A stretch of DNA of 64,000 nt from positions 248,001 to 312,000 of the forward strand of contig NIVC01001811.1 of the NCBI GenBank assembly GCA_002269645.1. Direction: 5' to 3'. Below are positions 1,266-61,271 of this stretch, piece after piece. A program made the position numbers and the translations under genes. Each line of letters begins with the position of its first letter. Position 1 is the stretch's first letter. The notes below the pieces were generated by a model. That model was not told the origin of the DNA, ran no database searches, and was given only the letters and a program-made list of their open reading frames with translations. Source of the stretch: Macrostomum lignano (lineage: Eukaryota).

Positions 1266-1290
1266 TTCGTTTGCAGGCTGTTGTTATAAA

Positions 1291-13794: not shown

Positions 13795-14960
13795 CCATGT
13801 GCACCCGTGTGCACCGACCATACTCGCCACTGCAAACAGCCATGTTCACCCGTGTGCACCGACCATGCTCGCCACTGCAAACAGCTATGTGCACCCGTGT
13901 GCACCGACCATACTCGCCACTGCAAACAGCCATGTTCACCCGTGTGCACCGACCATGCTCGCCACTGCAACCACCCGTGTGCACCGACCATACTCGCCAC
14001 TGCAACCACCCGTGTGCACCGACCATGCTCGCCACTGCAACCACCCGTGTGCACCGACCATACTCGCCACTGCAAACAGCCATGTTCACCCGTGTGCACC
14101 GACCATACTCGCCACTGCAACCACCCGTGTCCACCGACCATACTCGCCACTGCAAACAGCCATGTTCACCCGTGTGCACCGACCATACTCGCCACTGCAA
14201 ATAGCCATGTTCACCCGTGTGCACCGACCATGCTCGCCACTGCAAACAGTCATGTTCACCCGTGTGCACCGACCATACTCGCCACTGCAAACAGCCATGT
14301 TCACCGGTGTGCACCGACCATACTCGCCACTGCAAACAGCCATGTTCACCCGTGTGCACCGACCATACTCGCCACTGCAAACAGCCATGTTCACCCGTGT
14401 GCACCGACCATACTCGCCACTGCAAACAGCCATGTTCACCGGTGTGCGCCGACCATGCTCGCCACTACAAACAGTCATGTTCACCCGTGTGCACCGACCA
14501 TGCTCGCCACTGCAACCACCCGTGTGCACCGACCATAGTCGCCACTGCAAACAGCCATGTTCACCCGTGTGCACCGACCATACTCGCCACTGCAAACAGC
14601 CATGTTCACCGGTGTGCACCGACCATACTCGCCACTGCAAACAGCCATGTTCACCCGTGTGCACCGACCATACTCGCCACTGCAAACAGCCATGTTCACC
14701 CGTGTGCACCGACCATACTCGCCACTGCAAACAGCCATGTTCACCGGTGTGCGCCGACCATGCTCGCCACTACAAACAGTCATGTTCACCCGTGTGCACC
14801 GACCATGCTCGCCACTGCAACCACCCGTGTGCACCGACCATAGTCGCCACTGCAAACAGCCATGTTCACCCGTGTGCACCGACCATACTCGCCACTGCAA
14901 ACAGCCATGTTCACCCGTGTGCACCGACCATAATAGCCAATGCAACCAGCCATGTGCACC
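13795..14960. repeat. 45/35-bp minisatellite with ~305-bp higher-order repeat
   Basis: 45-bp unit GCACCGACCATACTCGCCACTGCAAACAGCCATGTTCACCCGTGT and a 35-bp deletion variant. A diagnostic variant recurs at 14441 and 14746. Confidence 0.95.
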
Positions 14961-17559: not shown

Positions 17560-18052
17560 AATGATGTTGAACTATTTAATTTCTGTGTCGCCGTTGCCCT
17601 TGTCTGTCCGGCAGCCCGTGGGCTAGCCTTGAACACTCGCGGGGACGTGTACCCCAAGGGTCGGCTTGCTTGGGCAGCTTGGACAAAGAACCGCGGCTGC
17701 CTGAGGCAGATATAAGACGCGCGGATCTTCTCCAGCCATTCCTGCCTAAATAGAGATGGCAGGTGGAGGTCGTCGCAGGCCTTAGCCCGGAGGCCTGACC
17801 TGTCTCACACCCTCCTGGCATGCTGCCCGAGCCTTCGCAAGCGGGCTGGACGCCTCGACGGATGAATCACCCGTTTGCATCGTTGCGTTGAGATGCTCGA
17901 AGCTAGATGCCTCTACAGATGAATCACCCGTGTACATCGCAGCGTTGAGCTGACCGAAGCTAGATGCCTCGACGGATGAATCACCCGTGGGCTTCGGAGC
18001 GTTTAGATGCTTGAAGCTAGACGCCTCGACGAATGAATTACCCGTGGGCATC
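17560..18052. repeat. Shared downstream block plus 57-bp array (4 copies), cassette 1
   Basis: Unit GACGCCTCGACGGATGAATCACCCGTGGGCATCGCAGCGTTGAGATGCTCGAAGCTA. The same block occurs at 25200-25735 and 32500-33060. Confidence 0.9.
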
Positions 18053-18075
18053 CGAGCGTTCGGCTGAGAAAGAAT

Positions 18076-19422
18076 TCAATTCCTCAGCCACGGGTTCAAG
18101 CGGAGTGCCTCTCCTCGCCTCTCCCCATAGTCATACAGGAGCTCTTCTCCTATTGCTATGTCTCGGAGCGCTTCGAACCCCAGCAGCGGTACTCCGCTCG
18201 ACTCGACCACTATTGGCCGGACGTTAGCACTTTTCCTGCTATGATTCAGGTAGCGTCCGACATACTCTTTTTCTTCTGTCGAATCTACGCAGTAAGCGCG
18301 GCCTATCCATGAGAAGAAGAAGAGAAAGCACGTCGGCTTACCTTGCTCAATTAGCTGCTGCTCGCGCTCGCGCCGCTCCTTTTGGCCTTTGATAAGGACT
18401 CCGCCGTACCAACAGACAAACACACCACGGGCCATATTCAGCCTCGCAAATGTGCCAAGCCCGCTGCCGTCGACGCCTGCGGCACGGACAATAACGTTGC
18501 CGGAGTTCATAAACAATTTTCTGCGGAGGTCGGCCTGTGCTAGCTGGGCTGCAGGGGTCCTAAACCCGCTCGGCAGGTCATTTGCAGTTTCAGCGTCGGC
18601 ATCGTCGGAGATGATCCTCTTGTGTGGGGTCACAAAGGGAATCGGCTGAATGCGGCCTTCCGGAGTCACCTCCGTCTCTTGGTGGATTTGAGCAGCGCAA
18701 CTCGAGTCCGGACTTCGCCGCTGAGTCCACGGAGACTCTGGCAGGGCTTCGGCCTCCGACAGCGTCTTCTGCGGGGCCTCGGCCTCCGGTAGCGTCTCCT
18801 GCGGAGCCTCGGCCTCCGGCAGCGTCTCCTGCGGGGCCTCAGCCTCCGGCAGCGTCTCCTGCAGGGCTTGGGCTGCCAGTTCTGCCTGCTGTGCCAGCCA
18901 TTTCCTAAAATTGACCTCTTGGCGAGAATGAGAAATTTCGGCCGCTGCAGGCAGCCTAGCAGATCCTGCAGCAGCGTCGCAGTCATAGGCAGCAGCAGCT
19001 GGTGTCCTGGGAACGTCGGTGGTCGATGGCGTTGCTTCCGTCGCAACGTCCGGCAGTCTTGCCACAAACACGGTCGGATTCAAGGATCGAAGATCCCGGA
19101 TTCCATAATCAATAAGCAGGCGCAGCTCGTTCAGCCGTTTGGCGGCGCGCTGTCGAGCTTCATTGACGGCGTCACGGCCGCTGGGACATTCTTGATCCCA
19201 ATGTTGTTGTTTGTAGTGCTGCCGCAGGTTTGACGAGGCAAAGGCACCACACAGCAAGCACAGCTTCACATCTGGCTTGGCATGCCAACGATGATAAAGC
19301 ACTACGGCATTGACTCGATCGACCTCATTTGGGTGGGTCAATCGGCCGTGTCGTAGGAGATTATCTGCCCGCAAGACAGAATAATCGCAGAGAGGGCAGT
19401 GCAAATACCGACTGGTAAACAT
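18076..19422 (-). CDS. Paired C2H2-like zinc finger + SETD8/KMT5A-like SET-domain protein, copy 1 (~448 aa)
   Basis: CPLC-x12-H-x4-H and CLLC-x10-H-x4-H. The SET region GLGTFA...WYGG...YCVDSTEE...GRYLNHSR...DIAIGEELLYDYG...NPWLRN follows SETD8 to its C-terminus. A putative 109-nt 5'UTR intron (19533-19425) favours ATG 19422. Confidence 0.88.
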   Translation of the reverse strand: MFTSRYLHCPLCDYSVLRADNLLRHGRLTHPNEVDRVNAVVLYHRWHAKPDVKLCLLCGAFASSNLRQHYKQQHWDQECPSGRDAVNEARQRAAKRLNELRLLIDYGIRDLRSLNPTVFVARLPDVATEATPSTTDVPRTPAAAAYDCDAAAGSARLPAAAEISHSRQEVNFRKWLAQQAELAAQALQETLPEAEAPQETLPEAEAPQETLPEAEAPQKTLSEAEALPESPWTQRRSPDSSCAAQIHQETEVTPEGRIQPIPFVTPHKRIISDDADAETANDLPSGFRTPAAQLAQADLRRKLFMNSGNVIVRAAGVDGSGLGTFARLNMARGVFVCWYGGVLIKGQKERREREQQLIEQGKPTCFLFFFSWIGRAYCVDSTEEKEYVGRYLNHSRKSANVRPIVVESSGVPLLGFEALRDIAIGEELLYDYGERRGEALRLNPWLRN

Positions 19423-19589
19423 TTCTTGCATACAGAAAAATATAAAACTTAAATAAGCAAAAGTCAAATGAAACAAGAAAATCAGCAAATACACAAGGTA
19501 GGAAAGAAACAAGAAACAAGAAATCAAACTTACGAACTTATGAACTTCAACTTATGTACTTATGAACTTAAAGACGAACAGATGAAAAA

Positions 19590-22520: not shown

Positions 22521-23399
22521 AAGTAGGCCACACAAGCAGGTGGCAGCTAATTCTGATGAATGCTATTGGATAGAACACTTATAGGGCTTTCCAATGACAC
22601 CACGAACGTTGAGATATACCCAGGTGAAGGCTGGCAAATTTCACTCAAATTGTCCATGTTATCTAGTGTCGCAATACGGCTAAGAAAATTATTACACAAT
22701 GCTTGGCCGACCTCAAAGAATAGCTCTAACCCAAACCTAGGGAAACTTCTATCTTTTGATATTACTTAAGTGGGATTTGGGTACATAATTCTCAAAGTAG
22801 GCGTTGTCGAATAGGAGAGATGTTGTAGTGCGCTTGTGTGCTGAGAAAATCATGGTCTCATGGACCGTATATTTGAGCTACTATATAGTATCACTGCCGA
22901 CGTGCGGCTACAATGTTACGCAATAGTTGAGGGACAAGTCAGTGCACGTTGGTCGAGAGGGCTATAGTTATTCATCACAGAAAAGTAAAGGCATAGACTG
23001 GGCGTACACTACATCTCTCCCCCAACCAAAAAAGTACAAAGTGTGTAATTCGATTAACAGAGATAAACGGAACGAGATTTCGGAACAGTTGTGTTAAATT
23101 TACGTTGGGTGAAATTTACGTATGCATGTACATGTGATACGAGCGTAATTAGTAGTCTGCAGTCTGCAGTTAGTAGGATGATGCTCTGTTTTGCTGGCCT
23201 TGTGGTTTGCTGACGTGCTGTCGTGGGGCCAGTGGACCTCCCAAATGCCGTCGCACCCTTCGGTCACCTGGCGGAGCGCCGATCGAAATTAGCGGCGTGC
23301 GCCGTCTGGTCACCAGCTTCCAGCCGGGCTCGGACGGCTGCTGAACGTCTGCTGTGTCTGCCGGCTGCTGTTGGCCGGCTGAGAGCGTCTCGCTCGCGC

Positions 23400-23607
23400 C
23401 AACGCCTCCGATGTCCTGGCGCTGGCGTCTCCTTGACACAGCCGCCTGCGCCTGCCGCGCCATGCCAGGCCACCAGAATTTCCTTCTCAGCCGGTCGATG
23501 GCCTTCCTCCTGCCGAATTGACCCTGGTGGGCCCAACTGACGGTCTGCTGCTGAAGCGCTGCGGGTACAACGATTCTGTTGCCCCTGAGCAGCACGCCGT
23601 CACGCAC
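23400..23607 (-). pseudogene. Gypsy integrase zinc-binding region remnant; catalytic core absent
   Basis: DGVLLRGNRIVVP...WAHQGQFG...LRRKFWWPGM is the typical pre-integrase HHCC region. Confidence 0.75.
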
Positions 23608-24983
23608 CTGAAGCTCCCCTTGAGCGAGTGGAAGCTGCCGGCCTGGGCTGTAGCGCCGGAGCGCCAGTTGCCAGTTGCCAACGCCTGCATGACGAAGGTC
23701 AGAGCCGGGTCCCCCGCTGTGGCATCGCGGACGCTCTTGATGGTCGGGCCTTCCGGTGCGGACTTGACGGAGTTGAGCTGCTGCAGCGGTACGTTGTCCT
23801 GGACTGGTTGCGCGTTTAGAGAATCGCTCAGACTTGTTGCCTTTCTGGCCGGTGCCCGGGCCTGCGTCCCCAGACTCAGCAGCTGCAGGGATGTCGAGGT
23901 TGCACGGCCGAGCACGCTGGTGCCGGTCCCTGGGACGATGATGAAGCTGGCGCGCCGGACCATTGAGCCAACCGAAACCTGCAGGCTGCAGGCTCCCACA
24001 GTGCGCAGAGGTTTAGCTGAACGAAATGAGAAAATCTTTGTCGTCGGCTGCAGGCCTGGGGGTTCCGGGAGCTCTCGCCAGGCTGCCTCGGTGAGGATGT
24101 TACAGTCGGCTCCGCTGTCCACCAGCACCTGCACTGGAGTCGCTTCCACCAGCACCGTGGCAAGAGCCGCTGTTGCGTTCGTGTCGGAGGCCATCACGGT
24201 CAGGCAGAAGACGTCGTCCTCTTCGCCCGAACTGTCGCTGCCGACCCGCAGAGCTCGCACGTCCTCCGGCCGGGACAGGCAGGCCTTGGCGAGGTGATTC
24301 GGCTTGCCGCATCGGTTGCAGGTCTTGCCTACCGCTGCGCTGCAGCTGCGGTGGCCGAAGTTGCCGCAGCAGATGCACTTTGGCTGCGTGCGATCGGCTG
24401 CCTGCGTGGCTGATCTCTGCGGCTGCCCTGGCGGGCTGGACTCGCGCTTCCGCAGCCGCTGCACGGTCACTGCGCTGGTCTCCATGAGGCTGGCCTGCGC
24501 CTCCGCTGCCTCCATGGCCCTTGCCACCCGGACCGCCTGGCCCAGGTCCACGTTGTCCATGGCCAGCAGCTTCCTGCGGAGCTGCTCGGAGCTGCAGCCG
24601 GCGATCAGCTGGTCACGGATCAGCGAGTCCCGGAGGCCTTCGAATTTGCAACAGTCCGCGGTGTTGTTGAGCCGCCGCAGCCAGTCGTCCAGGGACTCTC
24701 CGGTGAAGGGCAGGTTGAGCTGGCTGGTGAAGTGCTCATTGAGAGCCTTGATGAGCTTGTCGACGTCATCATCGGTGACGGCGAGTCCGGCTGCAACGGC
24801 CTGCAGGTCCTCGCCCGCTGTGTATAGAAGGAGTTGGCGAAGTCGCTTCTTGTCAGAGATATCAGCAGCTGCGGCGAACAGCTGGAACTGAGCCAGTCAC
24901 TTGCTCCACTTCGTATGTGCCGCATGGGGCTCCTCGCGCAAGTTCAATGTGGGCGGTATGGGTAGGCTTGCTTGCGACGCCAT
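23487..24983 (-). pseudogene. Gypsy gag-protease (one premature TGA); RT and RNase H deleted
   Basis: Single frame from ATG 24983 with zinc knuckles (CNRCGKPNHLAKAC) and aspartic protease VLVDSGAD. No RT motif. Confidence 0.85.
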
Positions 24984-25199: not shown

Positions 25200-25735
25200 T
25201 GTCGAACTATTTAATTTCTGTGTCGCCGTTGCCCTTGTCTGTCCGGCAGCCCGTGGGCTAGCCTTGAACACTCGCGGGGACGTGTACCCCAAGGGTCGGC
25301 TTGCTTGGGCAGCTTGGACGAAGAACCGCGGCTGCCTGAGGCAGATATAAGACGCGCGGATCTTCTCCAGCCATTCCTGTCTAAATAGAGATGGCAGGTG
25401 GAGGTCGTCGCAGGCCTTAGCCCGGAGGCCTGACCTGTCTCACATCCTCCTGGCATGCTGCCCGAGCCTTCGCGAGCGGGCTGGACGCCTCGACGGATGA
25501 ATCACCGTGGGCATCGCAGCGTTGAGCTGACCGACGCTAGACGCCTCGACGGATGAATCACCTGTGGGCATCGCAGCATTGAGCAGCTTGACGCTAGACG
25601 CCTCGACGGATGAATCACCCGTGGGCATCGTAGCGTTGAGATGTTCGAAGCTAGACGCCTCGACAGATGAATCACCTGAGGGCATCGCAGCGTTGAACTG
25701 CTCGACGATAGACGCCTCGACGGACATCGCGTCCG
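25200..25735. repeat. Shared downstream block plus 57-bp array (5 copies), cassette 2
   Basis: Near-identical to 17560-18052. Confidence 0.9.
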
Positions 25736-25749
25736 TGTGCGTCGCAGCG

Positions 25750-26839
25750 TTAATACTTACGGAACTGGGATTTCCATCGGTTGAGAATCGGCTTTAACCG
25801 AATCTGCAGCTCCGGATCATTCAGAGGCGGGAATCCAGGAGCGTTCGACAATTCCTGGAGCAACCTCTTCTTGGAGGGTTTCACAGGATTTTCGCTTGTC
25901 ATCCCATACGATCGGGCAAGCTTGTCAACTAGGCCATGCATGCGCTCACCAAGGTCGCAGTCTAGAAGCTGCATTGAAGCAGCCTTCCGCTGGGCCCTTA
26001 TCGAGAGCGGCAACTTCGGAACTCTTGCCAAGTCGACTTGGCGACCAGAGTGTGAGTTCCCTACTTGACTCACGGACGGCCCAATGTCGCTGTCGCTGTC
26101 ATCTGGAGCATCTTCTGAGCGGCTCGATTGCTTTTCCGGTGACTCGTCATCGCTGTCATCATCGCGATGAGGTCCAGGAGACGATTTCCTTATCGTCGAA
26201 ATGTCGTCCAGGAACGAGACAAAATCGTCGATGCACCCGCGCACGCACCACTTGGTCCAGCTTGCATGTTGAGTCGGAACCGACTTTTCACGGTTGAGAG
26301 TCGGCATTAACAAAATTTGCAGCTCCGGATCATTCAGAGGCGGGAATCCAGGAGCGTTCGACAATTCCTGGAGCAACCTCTCCTTGGAGGGTTTCACAGG
26401 ATTTTCGCTTGTCATCCCAAACGATCGGGCAAGCTTGTCAACTAGGCCATGCATGCGCTCACAAGGTCGCAGTCTAGAAGCTGCATTGAAGCAGCCTTCC
26501 GCTGGGCCCTTATCGAGAGCGGCAACTTCGGAACTCTTGCCAAGTCGACTTGGAGACCAGAGCGCGAGTTCCTTTCATGACTCGCAGACGGCCCGATGTC
26601 GCTGTCGCTGTCATCTGAATCATCTTCCGAGGCGCTCGAGTGCTTTTCCGGTGACTCGTCATCGCTGTCATCATCGCGATGAGGTCCAGGAGACGATTTT
26701 CTTATCGTCGATGCACCGCGCACGCACCACTTGGTCCAGCTTTCATGTTGGGATGATCACTTAGACGAAGGTCTTCGACGATAACAAGAGACTCATAATC
26801 AATGTCATCTTCATCTTCCTCAATGCGATCGCACTCCAT
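25750..26839 (-). pseudogene. Degenerate acidic orphan gene of cassette 2 with internal ~540-bp tandem duplication
   Basis: ATG 26839 (MECDRIEEDEDDIDY...). Blocks 25785-26220 and 26320-26750 are duplicated. TATA-like and GGAGCC array lie upstream at 26920-27175. Confidence 0.5.
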
Positions 26840-29105: not shown

Positions 29106-29330
29106 CGTTGCGCAGCTTGACGCTAGACGCCTCGACGAATAAATCATCCGTGGGCATCGCAGCGTTGAGTTGCTCGAAGCTAGACGCCTCGACGGATTAA
29201 TCTTCCGTGGGCATCGCAGCGTTGCGCAGCTTGACGCTAGACGCCTCGACGGATGAATTACCCGTGGGCATCGCAGCGTTGAGATTCACGGAGCTAGACG
29301 CCTTGACGGATGAATCACCCGTGGGTCTAG
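29105..29330. repeat. 57-bp array, cassette 3
   Basis: Same unit as at 17849 and 32780. Confidence 0.9.
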
Positions 29331-29352: not shown

Positions 29353-30114
29353 CTAGTCTTTTAGCCATGGGTACTGTCTTAGTACCTTTGGGCGGCTCTC
29401 GCCGTAATCAAAGAGGAGTTCCTCGCCTGCCTTTATGTCGCGAGCGGCCTGGAAGGCTAGCTGGGGCTTGTCGCCTACATCAACCACAGTCGGCTTTAAG
29501 TTTTCTTTCGGCTGACTATGATTGATGTAGCGTCCGACATACTCAGTCGTGTCGGTAGCATCGACGCAGAAGGCTCGGCCTCGCCAGGAGAAAAAGAAAA
29601 GGAATGAGCAAGTCTTCCCTTGATCTAGAAGTTGCTGCTCCCGTTCGAGGCGGGCTTTTTGCCCTTGGATCATGTGTCCGCCGTAGCAGCAGACAATGAC
29701 GCCTTTTGCAAGGTTGATCCGGGCAAAAGCGCCCAGGCCCTCAGCATCAACGCTACCGGTCCGGACCACGACATTACCGGACTGTATCAACGTCCGGCGC
29801 CACAGGTCGGCCTGTACGATCTGCCTCACTGACGCGATACCGGACGGCAGGGACCGGTCTTCACTTCCCCGGCTAGCTCGACCGTAGGGCGTCACATGAG
29901 GGACCGGTATGCGCGCCCCTTCCGGCGTGATAATAACGTCATTAACAACTGCCTCGCAATGAGCGGTCTCCATTGCAGGCGAAGGCACTGTCGGAGAGGC
30001 GGCAGCGTGGCCAGAAGACTGCGCCGGTGCTCTTCCGGTGACGTTAACCGGCGTTCTGGTCACAGGGGCATCTTCTGCTTCGGCTTCTCGCTGGAGCCAA
30101 ATGCTAAAGGGAAT
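29353..30114 (-). CDS. Zinc finger-SET protein copy 2, exon 2 (SET domain)
   Basis: TTGTCAG acceptor then IPFSIWLQRE... SET motifs CVDATD, GRYINHS, DIKAGEELLFDYG, YPWLKD. Confidence 0.88.
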   Translation of the reverse strand: MPFSIWLQREAEAEDAPVTRTPVNVTGRAPAQSSGHAAASPTVPSPAMETAHCEAVVNDVIITPEGARIPVPHVTPYGRASRGSEDRSLPSGIASVRQIVQADLWRRTLIQSGNVVVRTGSVDAEGLGAFARINLAKGVIVCCYGGHMIQGQKARLEREQQLLDQGKTCSFLFFFSWRGRAFCVDATDTTEYVGRYINHSQPKENLKPTVVDVGDKPQLAFQAARDIKAGEELLFDYGESRPKVLRQYPWLKD

Positions 30115-32499: not shown

Positions 32500-33060
32500 T
32501 AACTATTTAATTTCTGTGTCGCCGTTGCCCTTGTCTGTCCGGCAGCCCGTGGGCTAGCCTTGAACACTCGCGGGGACGTGTACCCCAAGGGTCGGCTTGC
32601 TTGGGCAGCTTGGACGAAGAACCGCGGCTGCCTGAGGCAGATATAAAACGCGCGGATCTTCTCCAGCCATTCCTGCCTAAATAGAGATGGCAGGTGGAAG
32701 GCGTCGCTGGTCTTAGCCCGGAGGCCTGACCTGTCTCACACCCTCCTGGCATGCTGCCCGAGCCTTCGCGAGCGGGCTGGACGCCTCGACGGATGAATCA
32801 CCCGTGGGCATCGCAGCGTTGAGATGCTTGAAGCTAGACGCCTCGACGGATGAATCACCTGTGGGCATCGCAGCGTTGAGATGTTCGAAGCTAGACGCCT
32901 CGACGGATGAATCATCCGTGGGCATCGCAGCGTTGAGATGTTCGAAGCTAGACGCCTCGACGGATGAATCACCCGTGGGCATCGCAGCGTTGAGATGCTC
33001 GAAGCTAGACGCCTCGACGGATGAATCACCCGTGGGCATCGCAGTGTTGAGCTGCCCGAC
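32500..33060. repeat. Shared downstream block plus 57-bp array (5 copies), cassette 4
   Basis: Unit starts at 32780, 32837, 32894, 32951 and 33008. Confidence 0.9.
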
Positions 33061-33094: not shown

Positions 33095-34039
33095 TCAGAA
33101 ATGGCCTCGCTGGCTCGGGTGCTCCAGCTGGCTTGTCTGGCCACGGTTTATGTAGACGCGCAGATACTCTAAGTACTCAAGAAACAGTTTGCGGCAGCGA
33201 GCTACAAACGGTTTCCCGCGGAGCTGCCTAGCATCAGCAGTAGGATGCTGCTTTGAACAGTGCTTTTTTAAGCTAGTTTCGGAGACGAAAATGCAAAAAG
33301 GGCACAAAAGAAGCCCTTGTCTTTCCTTTTCGCAATTCGTCTTGGCTTTAGCCTCATAAAGAGACAGGCGCTTAATCGCCTCTAGCCGCACTGGGTGTGT
33401 CTCGTTATGTTTGGAATGGCAATGCTGCTTAATTACGTCACTCCGAACTTTGGAGGAGCAGAGGGGGCACGTGCGCATTGCACCATGGCCTCCACGCTGA
33501 CCTGCTCCGCGTGAGGACGTGGCAGCACTTTCCTGATTTTCATCAAGGAACTCCTGAATTACTGCATCAATATATGTGTGCACGCCATTTGGGTCGAACT
33601 CACTGCCCTCTGAAGCATCAAATGGCCTCACACAAGGTGGGTCCGATGAATTGGTAATTGTGGCACCTTCGCTATACAGGAGCTCCAGAAATCCACCTGG
33701 CATGGGTGCCTCAGACATGGGAACCTCATCAGCCGACAGATCGACTGTGGGTACCTCCATGTAGGGCACATCAGCGAGGGCGGCAGAGTCAGGAGCCTCA
33801 GGGATGCTTATGATCATGGGCTCGTCAGGCACATAAGACATGGGCAGCCCAGGCATGAGTATCTCATCAGCCGACAGATCGACTGTGGGTGAATTCATGT
33901 AGGGTACATCAGGCGCCTCAATGATGTTAAAGAACATGGGCTCCTCAGCGCTTGGGCCGATCGTAGCCACCTCCGCGGGAACGCCAATGTCCTCATCAAT
34001 CAAAAAAGCAATTAACTGATCAAAGGCTTGATCGTCCAT
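33095..34039 (-). CDS. Acidic N-terminus + paired C2H2-like finger protein, 314 aa
   Basis: Intact ORF with CPLC-x11-H-x4-H and CPFC-x10-H-x4-H, and a duplicated DVPYMxxPTVDLSADE motif. It occupies the gene slot of cassette 4. Confidence 0.72.
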   Translation of the reverse strand: MDDQAFDQLIAFLIDEDIGVPAEVATIGPSAEEPMFFNIIEAPDVPYMNSPTVDLSADEILMPGLPMSYVPDEPMIISIPEAPDSAALADVPYMEVPTVDLSADEVPMSEAPMPGGFLELLYSEGATITNSSDPPCVRPFDASEGSEFDPNGVHTYIDAVIQEFLDENQESAATSSRGAGQRGGHGAMRTCPLCSSKVRSDVIKQHCHSKHNETHPVRLEAIKRLSLYEAKAKTNCEKERQGLLLCPFCIFVSETSLKKHCSKQHPTADARQLRGKPFVARCRKLFLEYLEYLRVYINRGQTSQLEHPSQRGHF

Positions 34040-34249
34040 AATGCGTTAGGTAAAATAATAAGCAAACAATAATCAAACAAAATTCAGGCTGCCATCTGCG
34101 TCAACGGTTGCCAAGTGCGCCGAATAGATTTCGGATTTCCATCGCCTAATAGGATTTCCCTAGCCCATAGACCATAGAAGATATGAACATTTATCATGCG
34201 GCACTAGCGTGACAGATTTCCCTTATGCACATATACAAGCCATAGAGTG

Positions 34250-34850
34250 GTTGACGCGTTTGGCTGACGCGTTTGGCTGACGCGTTTGGCTGATGCACTT
34301 GGCTGACGCGTTTGGTTGACGCGTTTGGTTGACGCGTTTGGTTGACGCGTTTGGTTGACGCACTTGGCTGACGCGTTTGGCTGACGCGTTTGGCTGACGC
34401 GTTTGGTTGACGCGTTTGGCTGACGCAATTGGCTAACGCGCTTGGTAAGTACGAGTGGGCTTGGTTGACACACATGGAAGGCGCACTTGGGCTTGTTTGA
34501 AGCGCTTGGCTGACGCGTTTGGCTGACGCGTTAGGCTGATGCAATTAGCTGACGCGTTTGGCTGACGCGCTTGGCTGACGCGCTTGGCTGACGCATTTGG
34601 CTGACGCGTTTGGCTGACGCGTTTGGTTGACGCGCCTGGCTGACGCACTTGGCTGACGCGTTTGGCTGACGCGCCTGGCTGAAGCACTTGGCTGACGCGT
34701 TTGGCTGACGCGCTTGGTTGACGCGCCTGGCTGACGCACTTGGCTGACGCGTTTGGTTGACGCGCTTGTCTGACGCGCTTGGCTGACGCATTTGGCTGAC
34801 GCGTTTGGCTGACGCGTTTGGCTGACGCGCCTGGCTGACGCGCTTGTTCC
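34250..34850. repeat. 13-bp minisatellite
   Basis: Unit GGCTGACGCGTTT. Confidence 0.95.
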
Positions 34851-35182: not shown

Positions 35183-35396
35183 TATATAATATTAGACTCA
35201 CTGGGTCCAATCCGACGGCCAGTCGGCTGGCCCTGTCCAGCCGGTCACTCCAGCGGCCGGCGGCCCGACGCGCGTCGGCCAAGTCGCGATCGATGGCCCG
35301 ATGTTGGCCGGGTGTCGTCGGGCCGTAGGCGCCAGCCGCCAGGGCCACCGCCTCCGCCTCCACCTCCTTGACGGCCGCGGCCGCCAATTGCCACAT
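35183..35396 (-). CDS. Possible exon of an orphan gene (helical, Ala/Arg-rich)
   Basis: GC-rich open frame ending at CCA|GTGAGT. No partner exon was identified. Confidence 0.3.
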
Positions 35397-35685: not shown

Positions 35686-35967
35686 TCAATCGCGTATGGG
35701 ATCACCTGTTAGATCTCGAACAGGCTCGCACGTCCCGTCACAGTCGTACGTCCCATATAGCGGATGCCCAACGCACAGCATCGTGACGAGTCGACCTTGC
35801 AACACGTGACCATGCCGAAGACGTCTCCGTACTTCGGGGTCGTACGCATTCACAGGGTCGTGACCAGCCAGAATGAGTAGTCTGTCTCGCCAATGGTGAC
35901 TCACTATCGATTGATACTTCTGGTTGACATTGAAGGTGTCCCCATTGATCAACCGTAGAAGCGGAAC
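35686..35967 (-). CDS. SF3 helicase gene, last exon (B'/C motif and Arg-finger region)
   Basis: TTTATCAG acceptor then VPLLRLINGDTFNVNQKY...RLLILAGHDP...YDPEVRRRL. Confidence 0.72.
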   Translation of the reverse strand, partial: VPLLRLINGDTFNVNQKYQSIVSHHWRDRLLILAGHDPVNAYDPEVRRRLRHGHVLQGRLVTMLCVGHPLYGTYDCDGTCEPVRDLTGDPIRD

Positions 35968-36074
35968 CTGATAAACAATACACATTCACGTACATCATTA
36001 TCAACAATATTGATAATTTACATTAATTTGTATAATTTATTATCAACAAGCTATATATGTACTAATTTACTCAC

Positions 36075-37455
36075 CATGGCGTCAGACTTAGGATCGAACA
36101 GCTCTGGTCGAACCTCGTCAATGAACATGACACGATGTACAGTGATGTCCAACGGATCGAATAGAAACGTGTTGGCTGTAGTTCGTGACGGGACTATATT
36201 GACAACACGAGTTTCACCGCAATGCGCAGCTACGCTATGAGTTTTGCCAACACCAGGTGGCCCCCATAGGTACACCACACCTTTACGTTGGCGAAGAGCT
36301 GCGCACACGGCTCGCATCGTTGGACATCCGCGTCGTTCATGTAGCGGTCTGTCGACATGTTATACATCAGCGTCGGCGGAAGCGGCGGCGACGGCGGCAT
36401 TGTTGGCGGGGGCGGCGGCGGTGGCGGCGTTGTCAGTGGCGGCGGCGGCGGCGTCGGCAGCAGCATTAGTCAGATTATTAGCGTCAGTCTCGCGTTCATT
36501 GGTCTGACTGTCAACACCAGTCGCGTTGTTGTCATCACTAGATACGTCGTGGATGGTGCGATCGCGTGTATGCCGATTTATAAAATGAGCACAACACGCA
36601 CAACCAGTGAGACGCTCTAGATTAATTCGACGTATCTTTTGTACGCGTTGAAATGGACGAATCATCTCGTGCTTACAAGAAACGTGGCGCATCAGAAAAT
36701 CGTCCTCTGGAGGTGGTGACTACTAATTCGCTATGATTTTCAATCCAATGATACGCTGACACGAGCATGCTACAGTCGGACATATTTACATTACGTAGCA
36801 TGGCGCCGCCATCGTGTCTTGTAACTGAGGCTAACGCATTCTTGAAATTTCGGACGCCGGCGATAAGGATTCGGCAATTGGTGTCGCTTACTATATATAC
36901 TGTATATTCGGGTCTGTAGACAGTATCTGGTGAATGATGGTATATAACTGGTAGCCAGACATGTTGCGTGGTGTTCGCATGTACAACGTAACTCCGCACT
37001 AGTTATAATCCAGATCGTCTTCGGCCACATGCTTAGATTGCCTGTGACGATTAAGTGTCTTATGTATCAGTTCATCGTCATCCAGCATGTTGGGCGAATT
37101 TCCGGTTAGATTGGCGACAACAAGTGCATTACAGTGACCGCGCAATGCCATGCAGAGTCGCACTTTAAGCTGGTCAGCATCAAGCACACCGGACAGTTCC
37201 ACGACGTGGTGTATCTGAGTGCGTAACGGTCTTCGCTTGAAAACGCGTTAAGTGGTTCGACGTCCCGATTTCTATGGAAACGTATTGGCCCGGAGGCTAG
37301 TGCATATCCGGGTTGTACATCCCTTGGGACAGTCGGACGCGCGTTTCTATTGGCATACGCGGCGGTGTTAGCGGCTAGATTGGCTGCAGCAGTCAAACTG
37401 ATGTCATCGACAGACAACTGTGTCAGCGATTGACTACTGATTGACAATGAGTCAT

Positions 37456-37499
<44 letters not shown>

Positions 37500-37975
37500 G
37501 GTGTCATAGTCGCTGCCAACTCAGCCGTCGCCGCCGCCGCCGCCGACTCATTCGCCGCATCGCTAGTCGTCGCAGCCGCCTCCAAACCAGGTGTCGCGTC
37601 TGGTACAGTCAGCGACGCACCTGTTGTTGATGGCGACTGTACAAGCTTTGCCCTCGCCTCATCCCTCGCTCGTATCGCCGCCAATGTCCTGTCTTTCATT
37701 GTCGCCGCATTCGCCGCTGCTGCCGCCGCAATCGAGACAGACGCCTGGCGTGACAATGCGTGCGCCCGGATACGATCGGTCGTATGCGAACTAACAGAAC
37801 TGCTAGAGTCACTGCCGCTAGACAATCTCGTCCGAATTGGTCCACGGACGTATGATTTGGTCGTCAGATTGGGCGCGCCTATTGTACTGGACGCATCAGA
37901 CTGCTGCGTATCGTCTGGCAACTGTCCAGTGTGTCGTTGATAGGGCGACGGAATTGCGCTCGACAACTGTGACAA
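36075..37975 (-). pseudogene. SF3 helicase gene, upstream part (frameshifts, one premature TAA); Walker A and B
   Basis: VYLWGPPGVGKT and VMFIDE, with ATG|GTGAGT donor at 36075/36074. 36720-36075 is one frame with a single TAA at 36360. Upstream ORF pieces abut with single-base shifts. Confidence 0.7.
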
Positions 37976-38160
37976 ATATGTATCTGATACAATTTCGCGT
38001 CGGAGCGCATTATCTGTTGACGTCGCCTTTTACGACACGGTTTTGCTCGTCGGCGAAGCAAACGACGCGCCATCTTGAACACGCGGCCCTGTGATAATTA
38101 TTTGAAAAAAGGCGCTTATTTATACATTTAAACCAAACAATAATTGTTTCATTCAACAAG

Positions 38161-39427: not shown

Positions 39428-42400
39428 TCAGGTGATCCACTGCGGGTGGGCCACCCTCAAGAACCCTATCACCATGTTCTCCTCGCGCAGATCCTTCAGT
39501 TCACGCAGACCAGTGTGCTGCCGAAGCCCGTCCCAACGCGCGCACGACCACCAGTGGTCTTTATCTTCTATGTCACCGCAGTCCTCGCAAACGCCTTCTG
39601 CTTCCAGACCAATCTTCTGCCTCCAGTACTTAGTGAGTCTGCAGTGACCAGACCTGAGCTGGGCTAAGATGGAAGCAACTTTCCTGCCACATTCCGCGCG
39701 TTCAATCCCACCACCGTACACCGAGCGCAGACGGGGGTCATTTATGCAGGGCCTCCACCGGTGCTTCAGGTGTCTGCGTAACGCCTCAAACTCAACGGCC
39801 GTCTGCCCTTGGGGCAAGAGCGCTGCCTGCTTTGCCAGCTCGTCGGCCCTCTCATTTCCAGCGATGCTGCAGTGGCCTGGGATCCACTGGAGGGTGATGC
39901 TGCACCATACACTCGTCCTCCTGAGCCTGTCAATCAAGTTAAATTGGCTCCTGTTTCCAGTGACCCTCTCGGTACCGGTGGCCAAGACGGCGGACTTGCT
40001 GTCAGTCAGGATGAGAGCGCTACTTGGCCTCAGCTCTTCCACAAGATCTAGCGCCAGGTGCAAAGCCGTTCTTTCCGCGATAAGGGAGCTACAGAATTCG
40101 CCCGCTGCAGCTAACTTGCAGTACTCACGTTCATCGCACCAGGCGACACAGGCCGCTCCTCCGTTCCTTCCGTTTCCGTCTACAGAGCCGTCCGTGAAGA
40201 TTTTCAACTCGACCTGACCTCTTTCCTGGATGGTTCGAGCCGCGTCTTCTGCGATGTCTTCATCACCCTTCTTGGCATTGCCGGATAGGTCGGGAAACAA
40301 CCCGACCCCGTCGAGTCTGAGCCTTCTCCAAGGGGGGTGCCTTTTCCTCATGAATTCCTCCCTGGGAGCCTCGCTGATGGATCTACTTTCATACCTCGCT
40401 TGCTCGCGCCATCCCTTATTTGCCTTAAGTCTCCTGGGGAGGACGATGTCGCACATATCACGCTTGAGGCTGGGTCGGGGCTCGCGCTCAGCTTTCTCCC
40501 ATTCGAGAACGCAGCGCAGGATCGCTTTTTCGGAAATGGGCGGGATTCCTGTTTCCAGGTGAACCGCTTCCACCGGCGTTGATTTCACGAGCCCAGCTGT
40601 CAGACGGAGGGCTTCACGCTGCGCCCGCTCGATCTTTTGAACGTTGGTCTTCGAAATCCAGGGTAACCAAGCTGCCGCGGCGTACCAAACGCAGCTCTCA
40701 ACGATCGCAGAGTAAACTTTCTTGAGACTCTCCGCCTGCCAGCCCCATTCCGTATTGGCCACCGCCTTGAGAACCCTGCTTCTTCGGCGCATTTTATCGA
40801 CCACGGCGTCCGTGTGTTCCTGGAAATTGAGGCCACGGTCGATGCGCACTCCCAGGTACTTAAGCGAGACTTTCCCCGCGATCTCCTTTCCGCTAATCCA
40901 GAGCTTCGGGTGGCGATTTTTGTCTTTCGTGGACTTGCTGAAGAGGCAGGATTCGCACTTCCCTGGGTTCAGCTCAATTTTAAGGCCATCCGCCCAGCCG
41001 CCGATCTTATCCAGCGCACGCTGCAGGCGTTTAGTGATCTCCTCGGTGTCATCTCCGCTGCACCAGACTGCCAGGTCATCCGCGAAGCCGCCGTACTGCA
41101 CTCCCTCCTCTTTCACACCGGTCCAACCATTTACATACAGGAGGAACAGAACAGGGGAGCTCACCGCGCCCTGCGGGAGACCTTCCTGGAGGCGTCTGTA
41201 TTTGCTGTTGCCGTCCCCGGCACGGACTCTGGCTTGTCTTCCTTCCAAGAAGCTAGCAAACCACCTTGTGATCCTGGCTGGGACGCCCTCCTCCATCATT
41301 CTCTCAAGGAGTTTCACTCTCCAAACTTTTTCGAACGCTTTCGAACAGTCCAATGTCACGGCCAGAGTTTTTTTTGGTTTTTTGCTCTCCCAGCCGTCTT
41401 GAATGTGCTGCACAAGCCTGAGCACCTGTTCCTCGGTGCTTCTGCCCCTCTGGAAGCCGGCTTGCCAGGGCTGAATGATGTTATTCTCCTCCAGCCAGAA
41501 GTACAACCTGTTCACGACCATCCTTTCCATGAGCTTGGCGCAGACCGGAGTTAGGCTGACCGGTCTGTAGGATTCCTTCGCCGCTGGGTCTTTGCCGGGT
41601 TTAAGCAACGGAACGATTTCCGCTTTCTTCCAGGACCCAGGGCATAGCTCATCTGCCCAGCTTCTGTTGAAAACATCCAACCGTCTCTGACGGCCTACTA
41701 CGGAGAGGTTTTTAAGAAGCCGAACTTCAACTCCGTCAACTCCCCCCTTCTTCGTTGGGTCCATCAGCTTGAGCGCATCATCCATCTCATCCATAACGAA
41801 TGGTGTGTCAAACTCCTGGTGCGCGTTATAGGCTCTTAGTCTTCTAGCCACCTCCACCCGCTTGACCCGGTCCGCCTTCCCGATCTTGACCTTACTGTTA
41901 TCAGCGTACATGCTAACGAACACAGCCGCCTTTTCGACATCCGATCTGGCTTCGCGCCCTTTGTCAGCTAAAATTTGGTTAGGCGGGGCAGTATCTCTAG
42001 CTGAGTACAGTGATTTGATGGTACTCCAGGTCTTCTTCCCGTCGTCGTTTTCTTTAAGGCTTTCCACATGTTCGGCCCAGAAGGACCGCTTCTTTTCCCT
42101 GATTTTAGCCTCCAGGTTCCTGTTTACCTCCAACCACTTTTCTCTGCTGACAGTCGTGCTTCTAGAGCAGTTGTCCCGCTCATTCTGCAGAGCGCTCAGT
42201 TCATCGTCCCAAAAAGGTTTGTACTTTCCTCCCACTTTCTTCTTAGGGATGCTCAACTCCGCCGCCTTGACCATGGCTGCACTCAGCCCTCTGACCTCGG
42301 CTGCTAACTCGGTCCTTGGCACTTTCTCGAACAGATCATCCGCATTACGTTGGAACTCCGAGAAGTCCGCTTTCTTCCACGCCCAGTTTAGCTTGGTCTT

Positions 42401-43812
42401 CTTTTGCCGGATTTCTCTCCTGGTAGCCACGGTGACCAGGATGGGGAGATGGTCTGAGCCGAGACCTTCGAGGGTTTTCCACTCGCAGCGCTCCGCCAGC
42501 TCTCCCGCCGCCAACGAAATGTCCGGGACGCTGGTCCGTCCTGTACGCCAATCCACGCGCGTCGCGGCTCCATCGTTTAGGATCCTGTAGTCAAATTCTT
42601 CGCACCAGGATTCCAGCTCTAAAGCCTCCCTTCTGCTGTCTCTTCCTTGGTCGTCGCAGCTTCCCCAGCTTCTGCTGTGTAGGTTTAAGTCGCCGAGAAT
42701 CAGCTCTCTTCTGTCTGGTTTAAGCCAGCTCCAGACACTATCATCCTCCCTGTCGTCACTGCCTTCGACAGTGCGCACAGGGGGGCGGTAAACATTAGTG
42801 ATGACACACCTTTCCTTCCTGTTAACGTCCACGATCACGCGGCAGCCCTCCGTGGTAGTGCCTTTCCAGCCTGTCCAGCGCTTGAAAGGAAGATTGTGCT
42901 TGATCAGGGTGATCAGGCCTCCCCCTTTAGACTTATCGCTTCTGCGGATCTCCACCCTGTCCTTCCGGGCGGTGGTGTAGCCGGCGAAGCGGGGGTTGGC
43001 GACTCGCTGTCAAGTTTAGATTCCTGAATGACAGCCACGTCAATGTCATGCGCTTTCAGAAACCGCTCAAGCTCCACTTTCTTATTTCTAATGCCATCGG
43101 CGTTCCATTGCAGAATCCTCAGGTTTTCCCTCCGGGCGCTCGACCAGCCCTCGCCGGCCGGGTTTCTGGTCTCTTCCTTATCCACGGCGATATTATCGGT
43201 TCTGGCTCTTTCCAACTTGTCTGAGCACATCTGGCAGGTCCAAAGGCCTTTTTTAATTTCACCGTCGATTTGAGCTCTGCTGGCTCCAGTACACTTGTTA
43301 TGGAACAGTTCGTCACATCTAGTGCACCGCGCAATAACCTTAGTGACCTTGAGCTTGCCTCCACAGCCAGGCTTAGCACATCTGCTACCCTTCTCGATCC
43401 TCTCGATGCAGCGTTTTCTTCTCTCCTCAGCCGCCGCGGCATCTTCCGCCAACCAATCCTCCTGCTGAGAGCATCCGCCGCACTTCCAATCCTTCTTTCC
43501 TTCTCTCGCTTTGCTCTGGCCCGCTCTAGTCAAGCCTGTGCAGCTGCCGTGGACTTCGTTACCGCAGCCGACGCAGCGGACCGGGTTTTGGCCCCTAGTG
43601 ATGTTTTTTCCACATCTGGCGCACGGGCCAGGGTTGGGTTCCACATCGCCGTCCCTGTCAAGCCGCTCAGTTCTCCAGCCTCTCCTGTCTTCCTGCGCGT
43701 TGGTAGCGGGTTTCGCAGCATACCCTTCCAATCTCTTCCACCCTCTCTTATCATGGTGAACATGGTGATCCGCGTTACTCCGGGTGTTCGTATCCAAATT
43801 AGGAACTCTCAT
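39428..43812 (-). CDS. LINE polyprotein: 2A peptide, two PHD fingers, APE, RT, RNase H, C-terminal CCHC (one -1 frameshift at 42991-42995)
   Basis: DVEPNPGP; CARC...HGSC...WKC; LRILQWNADG; GDLNLH; LGSDHLP; GLPQGAVSSP; FADD; IFTDGS...WIPGH...NERAD. One extra base in a G5 run restores one 1462-codon frame. Confidence 0.9.
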
Positions 43813-58519: not shown

Positions 58520-59458
58520 TACCTTTTAACGTTCTATTTGATAAAAACTGCAACCAATTTGGCCATGGCTCAGCCTGACCATAGACATAGAATTTTCCAT
58601 AGACAGCCACCGCTAGCGGCAACCAATTTGGTAAAAACTGCGAGCTATTTTGCCAGCTTGAAGATAGCAGCTGCTCTGATGGCGAATCGTGGGCCGTACC
58701 AAAAGATAAGTCAGCTGGATCGAGAACGAATCGTGAGAGCGTACAGGAGTGGCGACGACTGGGGAGAGCTTGGCAGAATGATGGGGATGAAGAAACCGAC
58801 AGTGAGGAACATCGTGACCACGTATGAACGAACTGGTAGAGTTGGCACTCTGCCAAAAGGAGGAGTGAAGAGGATGGCGCTGACGGAGGCTATGGTGGAC
58901 ACCATTGTTCAATTCGTCGAAGGTCAACCTACTGCGACGCTGCAACAAATGAGAGAGCACCTGCTGCACCAACACAATGACGTTGCCAACGTGAGTCTGA
59001 CCGCTATCAGTCGTGCTCTGGATGGTCGCCTCATCACCCTGAAGTTACTGCGCCAGGTACCTGTGAACTGGAACATGCCTGTTACAAAGGAGGCGCGAAA
59101 GATGCACGTTGAATGGATGCTGGACGAGGGAAGCCAGGTGAACACCATCTTTATGGACGAGTTTGGGGTGAACATCTGGACGGCGAGGACTCAAGGCCGC
59201 TCAGCGAAGGGGCTCCCAGCTGTGACTGTCGTCAGCGGACAGCGTGGGCAGAATCTCACCATCTGCCTGGCCATCTCGCAACTCGGCCTGATTCACAGCA
59301 TCCTGAGCTGCTATCTTCAAGCTGGCAAAGTAGCTCGCAGTTTTTACCAAATTGGTTGCCGCTAGCGGTGGCTGTCTATGGAAAATTGCTGCGGCTGCGT
59401 CAGGCTGAGCCGTGGCCAAATTGGTTGCAGTTTTTATCAAATAGAACGTAAAAAGGAA
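58520..59458 (+). mobile_element. Tc1/mariner-IS630 family deletion derivative with ~153-bp TIRs
   Basis: Inverted repeats 58520-58672 and 59306-59458, flanked by TA dinucleotides. Confidence 0.85.
58679..59365 (+). pseudogene. Truncated DDE transposase (HTH plus first catalytic Asp; C-terminus replaced by right TIR)
   Basis: HTH region RERIVRAY...TVRNIVTTYERTG, then IFMDEFGVN...GRSAKG...GQNLTICLAIS; the frame then runs into TIR sequence. Confidence 0.82.
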
Positions 59459-61228: not shown

Positions 61229-61271
61229 CTGTGTGTATTATAAGAGAAACAGAAATTCATCTTTATGCATT

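Follow-up and report, generated by a model that had tools for sequence, protein, structure and literature searches.

Helicases of the SF3 type differ from classical AAA proteins in a few features of the ATPase core. In SF3 helicases about 40 residues separate Walker A from Walker B, the Asn of motif C closes the sensor strand, and there is no C-terminal lid, whereas classical AAA proteins space the two Walker motifs by about 55 residues, have no pre-sensor hairpin, and carry a C-terminal helical lid. The SF3 domain of CRESS Rep and NS1 proteins is usually marked by the Pfam model PF00910. Genes of this type are known from flatworm hosts, as tapeworm genomes contain integrated densovirus non-structural genes encoding NS1, an SF3 helicase, many of them silent or decayed (PMC6880638). 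The tapeworm loci are recognisably densoviral, with structural genes present, and are arranged as head-to-tail concatemers (PMC6880638).

The locus described here lies within a 64,000-nucleotide stretch of DNA, hereafter the window. With a probability of roughly 60 %, we read it as a partly decayed copy of a very small, undescribed family of SF3-like proteins and not as an intact replication gene. An intact protein of this family is at least 444 residues long, and consists of an N-terminal domain, a helical four-Cys segment, and a compact AAA+ ATPase that lacks a C-terminal lid. The corresponding features of the window are as follows:

35686..37223, minus strand: remnant of the whole gene, colinear with residues 61-435 of L003 1531-2865 (tblastn and frame-aware alignments)
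36701..37223, minus strand: N-terminal domain remnant, fold unassigned, about 24 % identical to L003 and conserved in L001 too
36579..36700, minus strand: helical segment and first Cys pair (family alignments A1, A3 and A5)
36327..36578, minus strand: linker of low complexity with many Ala, Asn and Asp residues (GCN triplets)
36075..36326, minus strand: exon 1 of the ATPase core, with the second Cys pair, Walker A and Walker B
36240-36263, minus strand: Walker A, VVYLWGPPGVGKT
36114-36131, minus strand: Walker B, VMFIDE
35968..36074, minus strand: intron-like interruption of 107 nt, GTGAGT...TTTATCAG, 22 % GC, phase 0
35686..35967, minus strand: exon 2 of the ATPase core, including the stop codon, with zero breaks; it also holds a C-terminal His/Cys cluster
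35911-35934, minus strand: hairpin segment with an invariant Lys, in exon 2
35860-35883, minus strand: sensor strand with Ala-Gly-His at its end, in exon 2
35821-35829, minus strand: Arg run, in exon 2
37224..38082, minus strand: Ala-rich ORF and basic ORF, upstream, unsupported as family protein

The yardstick for the window copy is L003 1531-2865, a single open frame of 444 codons that is colinear with the window from 37223 to 35771. Frame-aware alignment to this intact relative, run without an intron state, counts two in-frame stops and two frame changes, all of which fall in the N-terminal and linker part (37223 to 36327) and none in the exons. The upstream part of the copy is consequently scattered over three reading frames. 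Because of the two stops and two frame changes a full-length protein is impossible from the window, which could encode at most an ATPase-only product from an internal Met in exon 1 (36317). The exons themselves have fared better, as 51 of the 72 family-invariant core positions that they cover are kept, including all the catalytic ones, and 10 of the 21 changed positions are common to P0001.

The original prediction had described an N-terminal half of unrecognised type upstream of the ATPase. About 170 window residues, together with the four-Cys cluster, are indeed homologous to L003, but they do not form one frame. The CxCCxH cluster that the prediction had also noted corresponds to the first Cys pair of a cluster of four Cys, CxxC ... 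CPxxxxxC, that is invariant in the family (C76, C79, C98 and C105). Ala-rich tracts are likewise present, and the linker runs to about 80 codons in the window versus 14-18 in relatives, but the Ala-rich ORF has no counterpart in the family. Colinear homology stops at about 37223, and neither the Ala-rich ORF (37106-37975) nor the basic ORF (37879-38082) has any similarity to L001-L003, so the proposal that the protein starts in the basic ORF is lost along with the integrity of the N-terminal part. L001, too, has low-complexity sequence ahead of its N-terminal domain and in frame with it, as an architectural parallel only.

An intact, intron-containing, full-length protein of Rep/NS1 type that begins in the basic ORF (at 38082) and carries a new initiator domain is contradicted by this reading-frame analysis, and we regard it as highly improbable. 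The ATPase half and its junction are as this explanation has them, the family does have a conserved N-terminal domain, and in Macrostomum a low-complexity N-terminal region is in frame with that domain; against these stand the breaks in the stretch from 37223 to 36327 (two stops, two frame changes), upstream ORFs that have no homologue, and a search for an HUH signature that found none. That an HUH motif was not clear upstream of the ATPase had been noted from the outset; no HUH or tyrosine endonuclease motif is recognisable there, and the intact version of the N-terminal domain has no match in Pfam, PDB or NCBIfam.

The two halves of the ATPase core are separated by the 107-nt interruption, whose ends are GT at 36074-36073 (GTGAGT) and AG at 35969-35968 (TTTATCAG), just as had been predicted. 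It is of phase 0 and joins frame 1 to frame 0, and its GC content is 22 % versus 52-54 % in the two exons. Thirty-five GT..AG pairs would give an open junction, and this one alone has a consensus donor together with a pyrimidine-rich acceptor and exact colinearity with relatives. The same 107-nt skip was moreover recovered unprompted by frame-aware alignment to an intact relative. Once joined, exon 1 and exon 2 align gap-free and colinear with the relatives across the junction, and their length equals that of P0002. A second AT-rich, intron-style island lies 500 nt downstream, and the two such islands in the window compare with 0.08 expected by chance, a 25-fold excess. Every sequence hallmark of a spliceosomal intron is present in the 107 nt, which we treat as a putative intron.

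An interruption in an otherwise decaying copy could be a simple insertion. On this explanation the pseudogene would be dead, the 107 nt would be a further insertion that disables it, and the GT and AG at the ends of the 107 nt would be fortuitous. All three relatives with readable DNA (L001, L002 and L003) lack the interruption, and the copy is in any case broken upstream by two stops and two frame changes. These observations give the insertion some weight, but the six-base consensus donor, the pyrimidine-rich acceptor, the phase of 0 and the exact restoration of P0002's length speak for an intron, as do an AT-rich composition like that of the neighbouring island, the excess of such islands over chance, and exons that retain all their catalytic residues, so that we consider a fortuitous insertion somewhat unlikely. 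The original prediction was to be given up on a junction both unsupported and not conserved in other copies. Because L001, L002 and L003 lack the interruption, that clause applies by half, but junction colinearity holds.

The family to which we assign the partly decayed copy is very small. Word-indexed protein searches with exon 1 and exon 2 returned no relatives, and an exhaustive phmmer search with exon 2 found only three true relatives among 1.84 billion representative proteins, namely P0001 (64 % identity, E 2.6e-30), P0002 and P0004, in each of which the parts that resemble exon 1 and exon 2 are contiguous. P0001 and P0002 are Macrostomum lignano proteins, and L002 and L003 are contigs of a DNA co-assembly from a brackish mat. 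A comparison of L002 with L003 (pN 0.13, pS 0.72, omega 0.058) shows that the intact relatives are under purifying selection, with omega about 0.06. The Macrostomum gene is a single exon that lies among host genes, with COG7 and EME1 as neighbours, and copies are decayed or chimeric; the ATPase half is intact in both the window and Macrostomum, and the N-terminal half is decayed in both. The only neighbour genes common to the window and the Macrostomum locus are remnants of Tc1/mariner type and one unassigned ORF. No second copy of the gene was found within the window, no relatives were found in IMG/VR (two scans), JGI metagenome contigs or prokaryotic genomes, and no prior description of the family was found in the literature searched. 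Exact look-ups of five window ORFs and of P0001 likewise met no recorded entry.

Two other matches were set aside. P0003 is spurious, being a repeat protein that aligned in six stretches. Residues 35-67 of exon 2 matched light-harvesting (LHCI) polyproteins with small whole-chain E-values, but these values are sums over repeats: a single unit contributes about 8 bits (i-Evalue 24-65), and light-harvesting chains with one unit only reach E of about 1. The segment is also colinear with the family alignment, and a light-harvesting complex reading was rejected.

The ATPase peptide strings quoted in the original prediction are present on the minus strand, and most of the motif layout that it built on them stands. 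Walker A conforms to GxxxxGK[ST] with a hydrophobic strand before it and has no second instance in the window, and it pairs with Walker B, in which D69 and E70 are invariant across the family. The pair is the sole one in the window, with 42 residues from Lys to Asp, and none arose in 60 Markov simulations. Motif B' is likewise recognisable, as N96, K98 and Q100 are invariant and a hairpin is predicted in both structure models, and R129 and R130, invariant in the family and kept in the window, are a candidate Arg finger. The layout had been called complete, however, and in this it falls short, for the Asn of motif C is missing and an invariant Ala-Gly-His stands at the end of the sensor strand instead. 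Because that Asn is absent, we term the family SF3-like and do not file it as a member of SF3.

Profile comparisons give a correspondingly guarded answer. None of the curated thresholds of the SF3 Pfam models PF00910, PF01057, PF00519 and PF19263 is reached. PF00910, the only specific Pfam model that aligned from Walker A through the sensor strand, scores 17.5 bits with a cut-off of 21.5, and PF19263 gives E 0.0021 for one member, scores that are no better than those of generic AAA models. A sequence-only profile search of PDB places a classical AAA protein, fidgetin-like 1, first (E 8e-4), and the unspliced pieces, run against Pfam, PHROGs and NCBIfam, yield Walker-A-level AAA matches for exon 1 and nothing elsewhere. 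Sequence profiles thus cannot separate SF3 from generic AAA+. Membership of the Rep/NS1 type, as originally proposed, is not supported, given that no HUH or Tyr motif was found, that no Rep, NS1 or E1 Pfam model matches at threshold, and that an AAA protein heads the PDB profiles.

Structure prediction, by comparison, leans towards SF3. Two AF2 models, of P0002 and P0005, were built from five-row alignments and have a mean pLDDT of 62-63; the core reaches 70-87 and shows the same topology in both, with the hairpin present and the lid absent, although the hairpin tip has low pLDDT in the P0002 model. The predicted order is a strand, the P-loop helix, the Walker B strand, a helix, the Lys beta-hairpin, the sensor strand, the Arg-Arg helix and a last strand, after which only about 40 residues follow in the models; SF3 helicases (papillomavirus E1, AAV Rep40, CRESS Rep and parvoviral NS1) have the same order. 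Fold comparisons covered PDB and the viral structure library BFVD. Papillomavirus E1 fills the first ten PDB ranks for the P0005 model (4e-6 to 9e-5); with the P0002 model, AAV2 Rep40 and BPV E1 stand at ranks 2-3, and the target-normalised TM-score of PCV2 Rep is 0.58. In BFVD every named match in the top 50 is a CRESS Rep or a parvoviral/densoviral NS1, the best at 2.6e-8. The two models therefore favour an SF3-type fold for the ATPase core, and the SF3 assignment of the original prediction survives at the level of fold but is not singled out by sequence profiles.

It could be argued that the family arose in the cell, as a lineage-specific AAA+ ATPase of flatworm-like animals without viral or mobile ancestors, and that the window holds a decaying, intron-containing paralogue. 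Sequence profiles favour generic or classical AAA models, the Macrostomum gene sits among COG7 and EME1, the window copy contains an intron-like sequence, and searches for an exogenous viral relative or a capsid partner came up empty. We nevertheless judge a cellular ancestry quite unlikely, considering that viral SF3 helicases come first or near first in the fold searches, that a lid is lacking, that the 42-residue Walker A to Walker B spacing leaves a 12-residue gap against classical AAA, that there are only three true relatives among 1.84 billion representatives, that the Macrostomum gene is single-exon, and that copies are decayed or chimeric.

If the SF3-like reading of the family is correct, intact members would be ring-forming, NTP-driven DNA translocases, in which the hairpin Lys would face the central channel and touch the DNA there, the Arg pair would work in trans on the nucleotide bound by the adjacent subunit, and target recognition would come from the N-terminal domain and the Cys cluster. 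The family would most likely descend from a replication gene that a small DNA virus or mobile element brought into flatworm-like genomes. In the window the ATPase core keeps all its catalytic residues and is split by the 107-nt intron-like sequence. A more specific proposal goes further: flatworm-like meiofauna would harbour an unrecognised lineage of small DNA viruses or mobile elements, and this family would supply its replication protein, an SF3-type helicase with a non-canonical Ala-Gly-His sensor, a zinc-cluster module and an N-terminal domain that has no sequence kinship to HUH, E1 or large-T origin-binding domains. Host genomes would have kept the ATPase half, which in this lineage would have acquired an intron. 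The proposal is tentative and, taken as a whole, unlikely. L001 and L003 yielded no capsid-like ORF, neither IMG/VR scan an exogenous viral relative, and the viral likeness is one of fold only. Nothing supports the original prediction in calling the protein the replication protein of an element: the locus is not bounded by terminal inverted or direct repeats, its surroundings consist of triplet low complexity only, and no capsid-like partner or viral-contig relative was found. Rfam has no match in the whole window.

For the window the practical result is a broken copy and not a working replication gene. Should the SF3-like reading be right, a branch of viral-type replication helicases has been missed entirely by standard domain libraries, and the family would add a data point on how the replication modules of small DNA viruses and mobile elements diversified in little-studied invertebrates. 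It would also be a possible case of an ATPase half kept after endogenisation and of intron gain, and, if the lineage is an unrecognised viral or mobile one, an acquired spliceosomal intron would point to domestication. A cellular, lineage-specific AAA+ would still be an unannotated family, of modest interest.

Among known systems, papillomavirus E1 (2v9p, 7apd, 1tue and 2gxa) shares with the family a compact AAA+ core, a pre-sensor beta-hairpin, the lack of a lid, and helices before the core. The family is only 11-20 % identical to E1, however, PF00519 goes undetected, and Ala-Gly-His replaces the motif C Asn; the core of the family is also preceded by a four-Cys cluster and followed by a His/Cys cluster, and its N-terminal domain is without detectable similarity to the E1 DNA-binding domain. 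CRESS Rep and parvoviral or densoviral NS1 (AAV2 Rep40, 9rm5; PCV2 Rep, 8xms) have a similar core fold, as seen in the BFVD top 50, but differ in that PF00910 stays below threshold, no HUH or tyrosine motif was found upstream, and no capsid gene, stem-loop origin or terminal hairpins lie nearby. With classical AAA proteins (fidgetin-like 1, 4l15; FtsH; p97) the Walker A, Walker B, pre-sensor strand and Arg-Arg positions all align, but the family differs by about 15 additional residues in a hairpin segment and by the lack of a helical lid, the 42-residue Walker A to Walker B spacing forces the 12-residue gap against fidgetin-like 1, and classical AAA proteins ranked under SF3 helicases in the fold searches. 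Finally, the densovirus integrations of tapeworms provide a precedent for DNA-virus genes in flatworm genomes (PMC6880638), but the present locus shows neither a viral relative nor a partner gene nor a concatemer.

Within the minus-strand locus at 35686-38082, positions 35686-37223 are a decayed gene copy belonging to an SF3-like family with no earlier description. The original prediction was correct in its coordinates and peptide strings, as read from the minus strand. An open frame at 36051-36317 encodes MRAVCAALRQRKGVVYLWGPPGVGKT...VMFIDEVRPELFDPKSDAM and continues into GTGAGT at 36074, TTTATCAG ends at 35968, and another frame then reads VPLLRLINGDTFNVNQKYQS...RLLILAGHDP...EVRRRL to a stop at 35686. 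Exon 1 (36075-36326, carrying Walker A and Walker B) and exon 2 (35686-35967) are separated by a phase 0 interruption of 107 nt, with a GC content of 22 % versus 52-54 % in the flanking coding blocks. The Walker A/Walker B pair is unique within the 64-kb window, and 0 of 60 simulated sequences produced one.

Domain libraries and a word-indexed protein search, given the pieces as they stand, returned nothing specific. When 1.84 billion representatives were searched exhaustively by phmmer with exon 2 as the sole query, four proteins matched, three of them genuine: P0001 (64 % identity, E 2.6e-30), P0002 (43 %) and P0004 (42 %). The first two are from Macrostomum lignano itself. P0002 is the hypothetical single-exon gene BOX15_Mlig013629g1, on contig L001, with which the window has no nucleotide similarity. 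The public gene model of P0001 (UniRef100_A0A1I8FT91) joins a family copy to the C-terminus of a rhodopsin-type GPCR; that copy is missing about 20 residues between Walker A and B, and its Walker B Glu and one of its finger Arg residues are substituted. Probably the annotation has produced a chimera here on top of a decayed copy. P0004 and a further relative, P0005, are encoded on contigs L003 and L002, respectively, which were co-assembled from the DNA of microbial mats in the brackish Etang de Berre (PMC8605020). Between these contigs 72 % of synonymous and 13 % of non-synonymous sites differ, and the resulting omega of about 0.06 indicates strong purifying selection on the gene. No relatives were found in IMG/VR, a JGI contig scan or prokaryotic genomes.

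The window exons retain 51 of the 72 family-invariant core positions that they cover, including the Walker A Lys/Thr, the Walker B Asp-Glu, the hairpin Asn/Lys/Gln, the Ala-Gly-His strand end, the Arg-Arg pair and the C-terminal His/Cys residues. P0001 has ten of the 21 substitutions too, as well as a six-residue insert, which places the two copies in one sub-lineage, and in these alignments the substitutions do not look like random decay.

When exons 1 and 2 were entered as separate alignment rows, the corresponding segments were contiguous in every relative. The window's ...KSDAM + VPLLRL... has the same length as ...SSDLEATLLRL... of P0002, and P0004 and P0005 differ by at most one residue. 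Frame-aware alignment of an intact relative with the window DNA recovered the 107-nt skip unprompted, and among 35 GT..AG pairs giving an open junction, the reported one alone has a consensus donor together with a pyrimidine-rich acceptor and is exactly colinear with relatives. The exon junction was placed correctly. Its conservation in other copies extends to the colinear exons but not to the interruption, as no insertion is present at this point in any of the three relatives with readable DNA (L001, L002 and L003), and the interruption is therefore specific to the window copy or its lineage. A similar island is present 500 nt downstream (35201-35051), where GTGAGT is followed by an AT-rich stretch and then TTTTCCTGCAG, between GC-rich blocks; two such intron-like islands were observed in the window versus 0.08 expected from block shuffles. 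On sequence features, the balance tilts slightly towards a true spliced intron, although the 107 nt may instead be a fortuitously intron-like insertion in a dying gene copy.

Decay is evident upstream of the ATPase exons. The original prediction took the locus for a replication gene that may start at 38082, but an intact full-length gene is contradicted by two in-frame stops and two frame changes in the N-terminal part relative to L003, where positions 1531-2865 form a single open frame of 444 codons; exons 1 and 2 have no such breaks. The L003 frame is colinear with the window from about 37223 to 35771, and thus part of the predicted upstream half belongs to the ancestral protein, namely a domain of ~170 residues followed by a helical segment with the first Cys pair. 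This pair, described earlier as a CxCCxH cluster, is one half of a family-invariant four-Cys cluster, CxxC...CPxxxxxC, whose intervening linker has undergone GCN-triplet expansion (~80 codons in the window versus 14-18 in relatives). Homology to L003 holds for the domain and the Cys cluster, but there is no single reading frame. In L001-L003 no counterpart was detected for the Ala-rich ORF 37106-37975 or for the basic ORF 37879-38082. The two halves likewise differ at the Macrostomum locus, where the annotated gene is confined to the ATPase half and several breaks interrupt its homologous upstream counterpart. In a Macrostomum ORF of 360 aa a low-complexity region is in frame with the start of the conserved domain, to which the upstream ORFs of the window offer an architectural parallel only. 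Near its N-terminus this ORF (L001 8454-9536) shares a short acidic motif, DSDDE with hydrophobic residues, with the upstream ORF L003 452-991 (z 4.9, 0 of 300 shuffles), and none comparable was seen in the window. The family protein may on this evidence extend further at its N-terminus, through a region that is mostly of low complexity and that in L003 would be split off by an intron or frame change. For the intact N-terminal domain, Pfam, PDB sequences and NCBIfam gave no relative, and neither an HUH nor a tyrosine motif could be recognised in it.

With respect to ATPase type, the sequence evidence is ambiguous. The SF3 'RNA_helicase' model PF00910 is the only Pfam model to span Walker A to the sensor strand in P0002, at 17.5 bits versus a cut-off of 21.5, and another SF3 model, PF19263, matches one family member; generic AAA models score equal to or above both. 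Searched against PDB sequences, the family profile ranks first the classical AAA protein fidgetin-like 1 (E 8e-4), in an alignment that takes in both Walker motifs, the sensor strand and the Arg-Arg motif but needs a 12-residue gap. A placement of this kind had been named beforehand as refuting the original prediction; fold searches, however, favour SF3. These used two AlphaFold2 models, of P0002 and P0005, each built from a very shallow alignment with the window pieces as separate rows (mean pLDDT 62-63, core 70-87). Both predict an identical topology, in which a beta-hairpin separates the post-Walker-B helix from the sensor strand and the last strand is not followed by a helical lid. In the PDB, ranks 1-10 for the P0005 model are all papillomavirus E1 helicase (4e-6 to 9e-5), followed by cellular hairpin-clade AAA+ proteins (NtrC-type, RuvB, HslU), with AAV2 Rep40 at rank 19. 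For the P0002 model, ranks 1-3 are Hda, AAV2 Rep40 and BPV E1 with nearly equal E-values, and of the SF3 matches it is PCV2 Rep that reaches the highest target-normalised TM-score, 0.58. In a viral structure library, every named match in the top 50 is either a CRESS Rep or a parvoviral/densoviral NS1 (best 2.6e-8). Comparison of these shallow-alignment models with PDB and viral structures suggests, with a probability of roughly 70 %, that the ATPase core is SF3-like, so the SF3-type fold originally proposed is probably right. Because the core has an invariant Ala-Gly-His in place of the defining motif C asparagine and scores below threshold with every curated SF3 model, it is not filed in any named SF3 family.

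The surrounding window is eukaryotic and repeat-rich.

Features around the putative helicase locus
1160-2647 (-): 495-aa ORF, with a 42-bp tandem repeat (17 copies) at 1291-2005
13795-14960: 45-bp tandem array, 27 copies, higher-order periods 125 and 305; long spurious ORFs on both strands
17845-18060, 25480-25724, 29115-29325, 32776-33059: 57-bp minisatellite, 3.7-5 copies, a 19-residue repeat when translated
18076-19527, 25750-26454, 29353-30063, 33095-34039 (-): ORFs, each with the minisatellite just downstream
23170-23607 (-): integrase-type zinc-binding N-terminus, retroelement remnant
23487-24560 (-): gag-type zinc knuckles and aspartyl protease, retroelement remnant
34248-34846: 13-nt tandem array, about 45 copies of TGGCTGACGCGTT, several frames open on the minus strand, flanked by the helicase locus and the zinc-finger ORF
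35202-35396 (-): GC-rich (about 72 %), ATG-initiated block preceding the 151-nt island 35201-35051
39428-42955 (-): non-LTR retrotransposon with an intact-looking 1175-aa ORF (endonuclease, reverse transcriptase, RNase H), the immediate upstream neighbour of the helicase locus and on its strand
42913-43812 (-): ORF encoding PHD fingers and the first part of an endonuclease domain, preceding the retrotransposon frame
58538-59365 (+), and L001 11389-11724: Tc1/mariner-type transposase remnants (HTH domains and the start of DDE_3), ~34 % protein identity

The four minisatellite-flanked ORFs, with SET domains in two and C2H2-like zinc fingers in one, look like the products of tandem gene duplication, a family whose members have a repeat-bearing 3' part in common. 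Pfam finds a listerin N-terminal domain in the 495-aa ORF, and galaxin-like repeats below threshold. The Tc1/mariner remnants were rejected as a sign of a larger unit common to the window and L001, being common repeats. Separately, an unannotated region of the window, 60710-61231 (-), resembles a 537-aa Macrostomum ORF without a Pfam domain (L001 14941-16554, minus strand; 25-39 % protein identity, E 4.5e-16). Within exon 2, residues 35-67 (35767-35865) bear a weak likeness to an LHC helix motif, G.DP...DP.V..R.R...V..GRL.....VG, judged to be chance because the small whole-chain E-values sum the repeated units of LHCI polyproteins.

The locus had also been regarded as the replication protein of an element. 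No terminal inverted or direct repeats surround it, only triplet tracts, and no capsid-like or other conserved partner gene lies beside the family gene in L001 or L003; IMG/VR likewise lacks a relative, and that designation is not supported. A viral or mobile origin of the family is what we infer from the fold, a distribution that is extremely narrow and patchy, the Macrostomum gene with its single exon, and the decayed or chimeric copies; a lineage-specific cellular AAA+ family is an unlikely rival. The interest lies in the family itself, with its unmatched N-terminal domain, and in the possible retention of, and intron gain by, the ATPase half, rather than in the window copy functioning as a gene. 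The presence of such genes in flatworms has a precedent in tapeworm genomes with integrated densovirus NS1, but unlike the window locus, those integrations are recognisably densoviral and linked to structural genes (PMC6880638).
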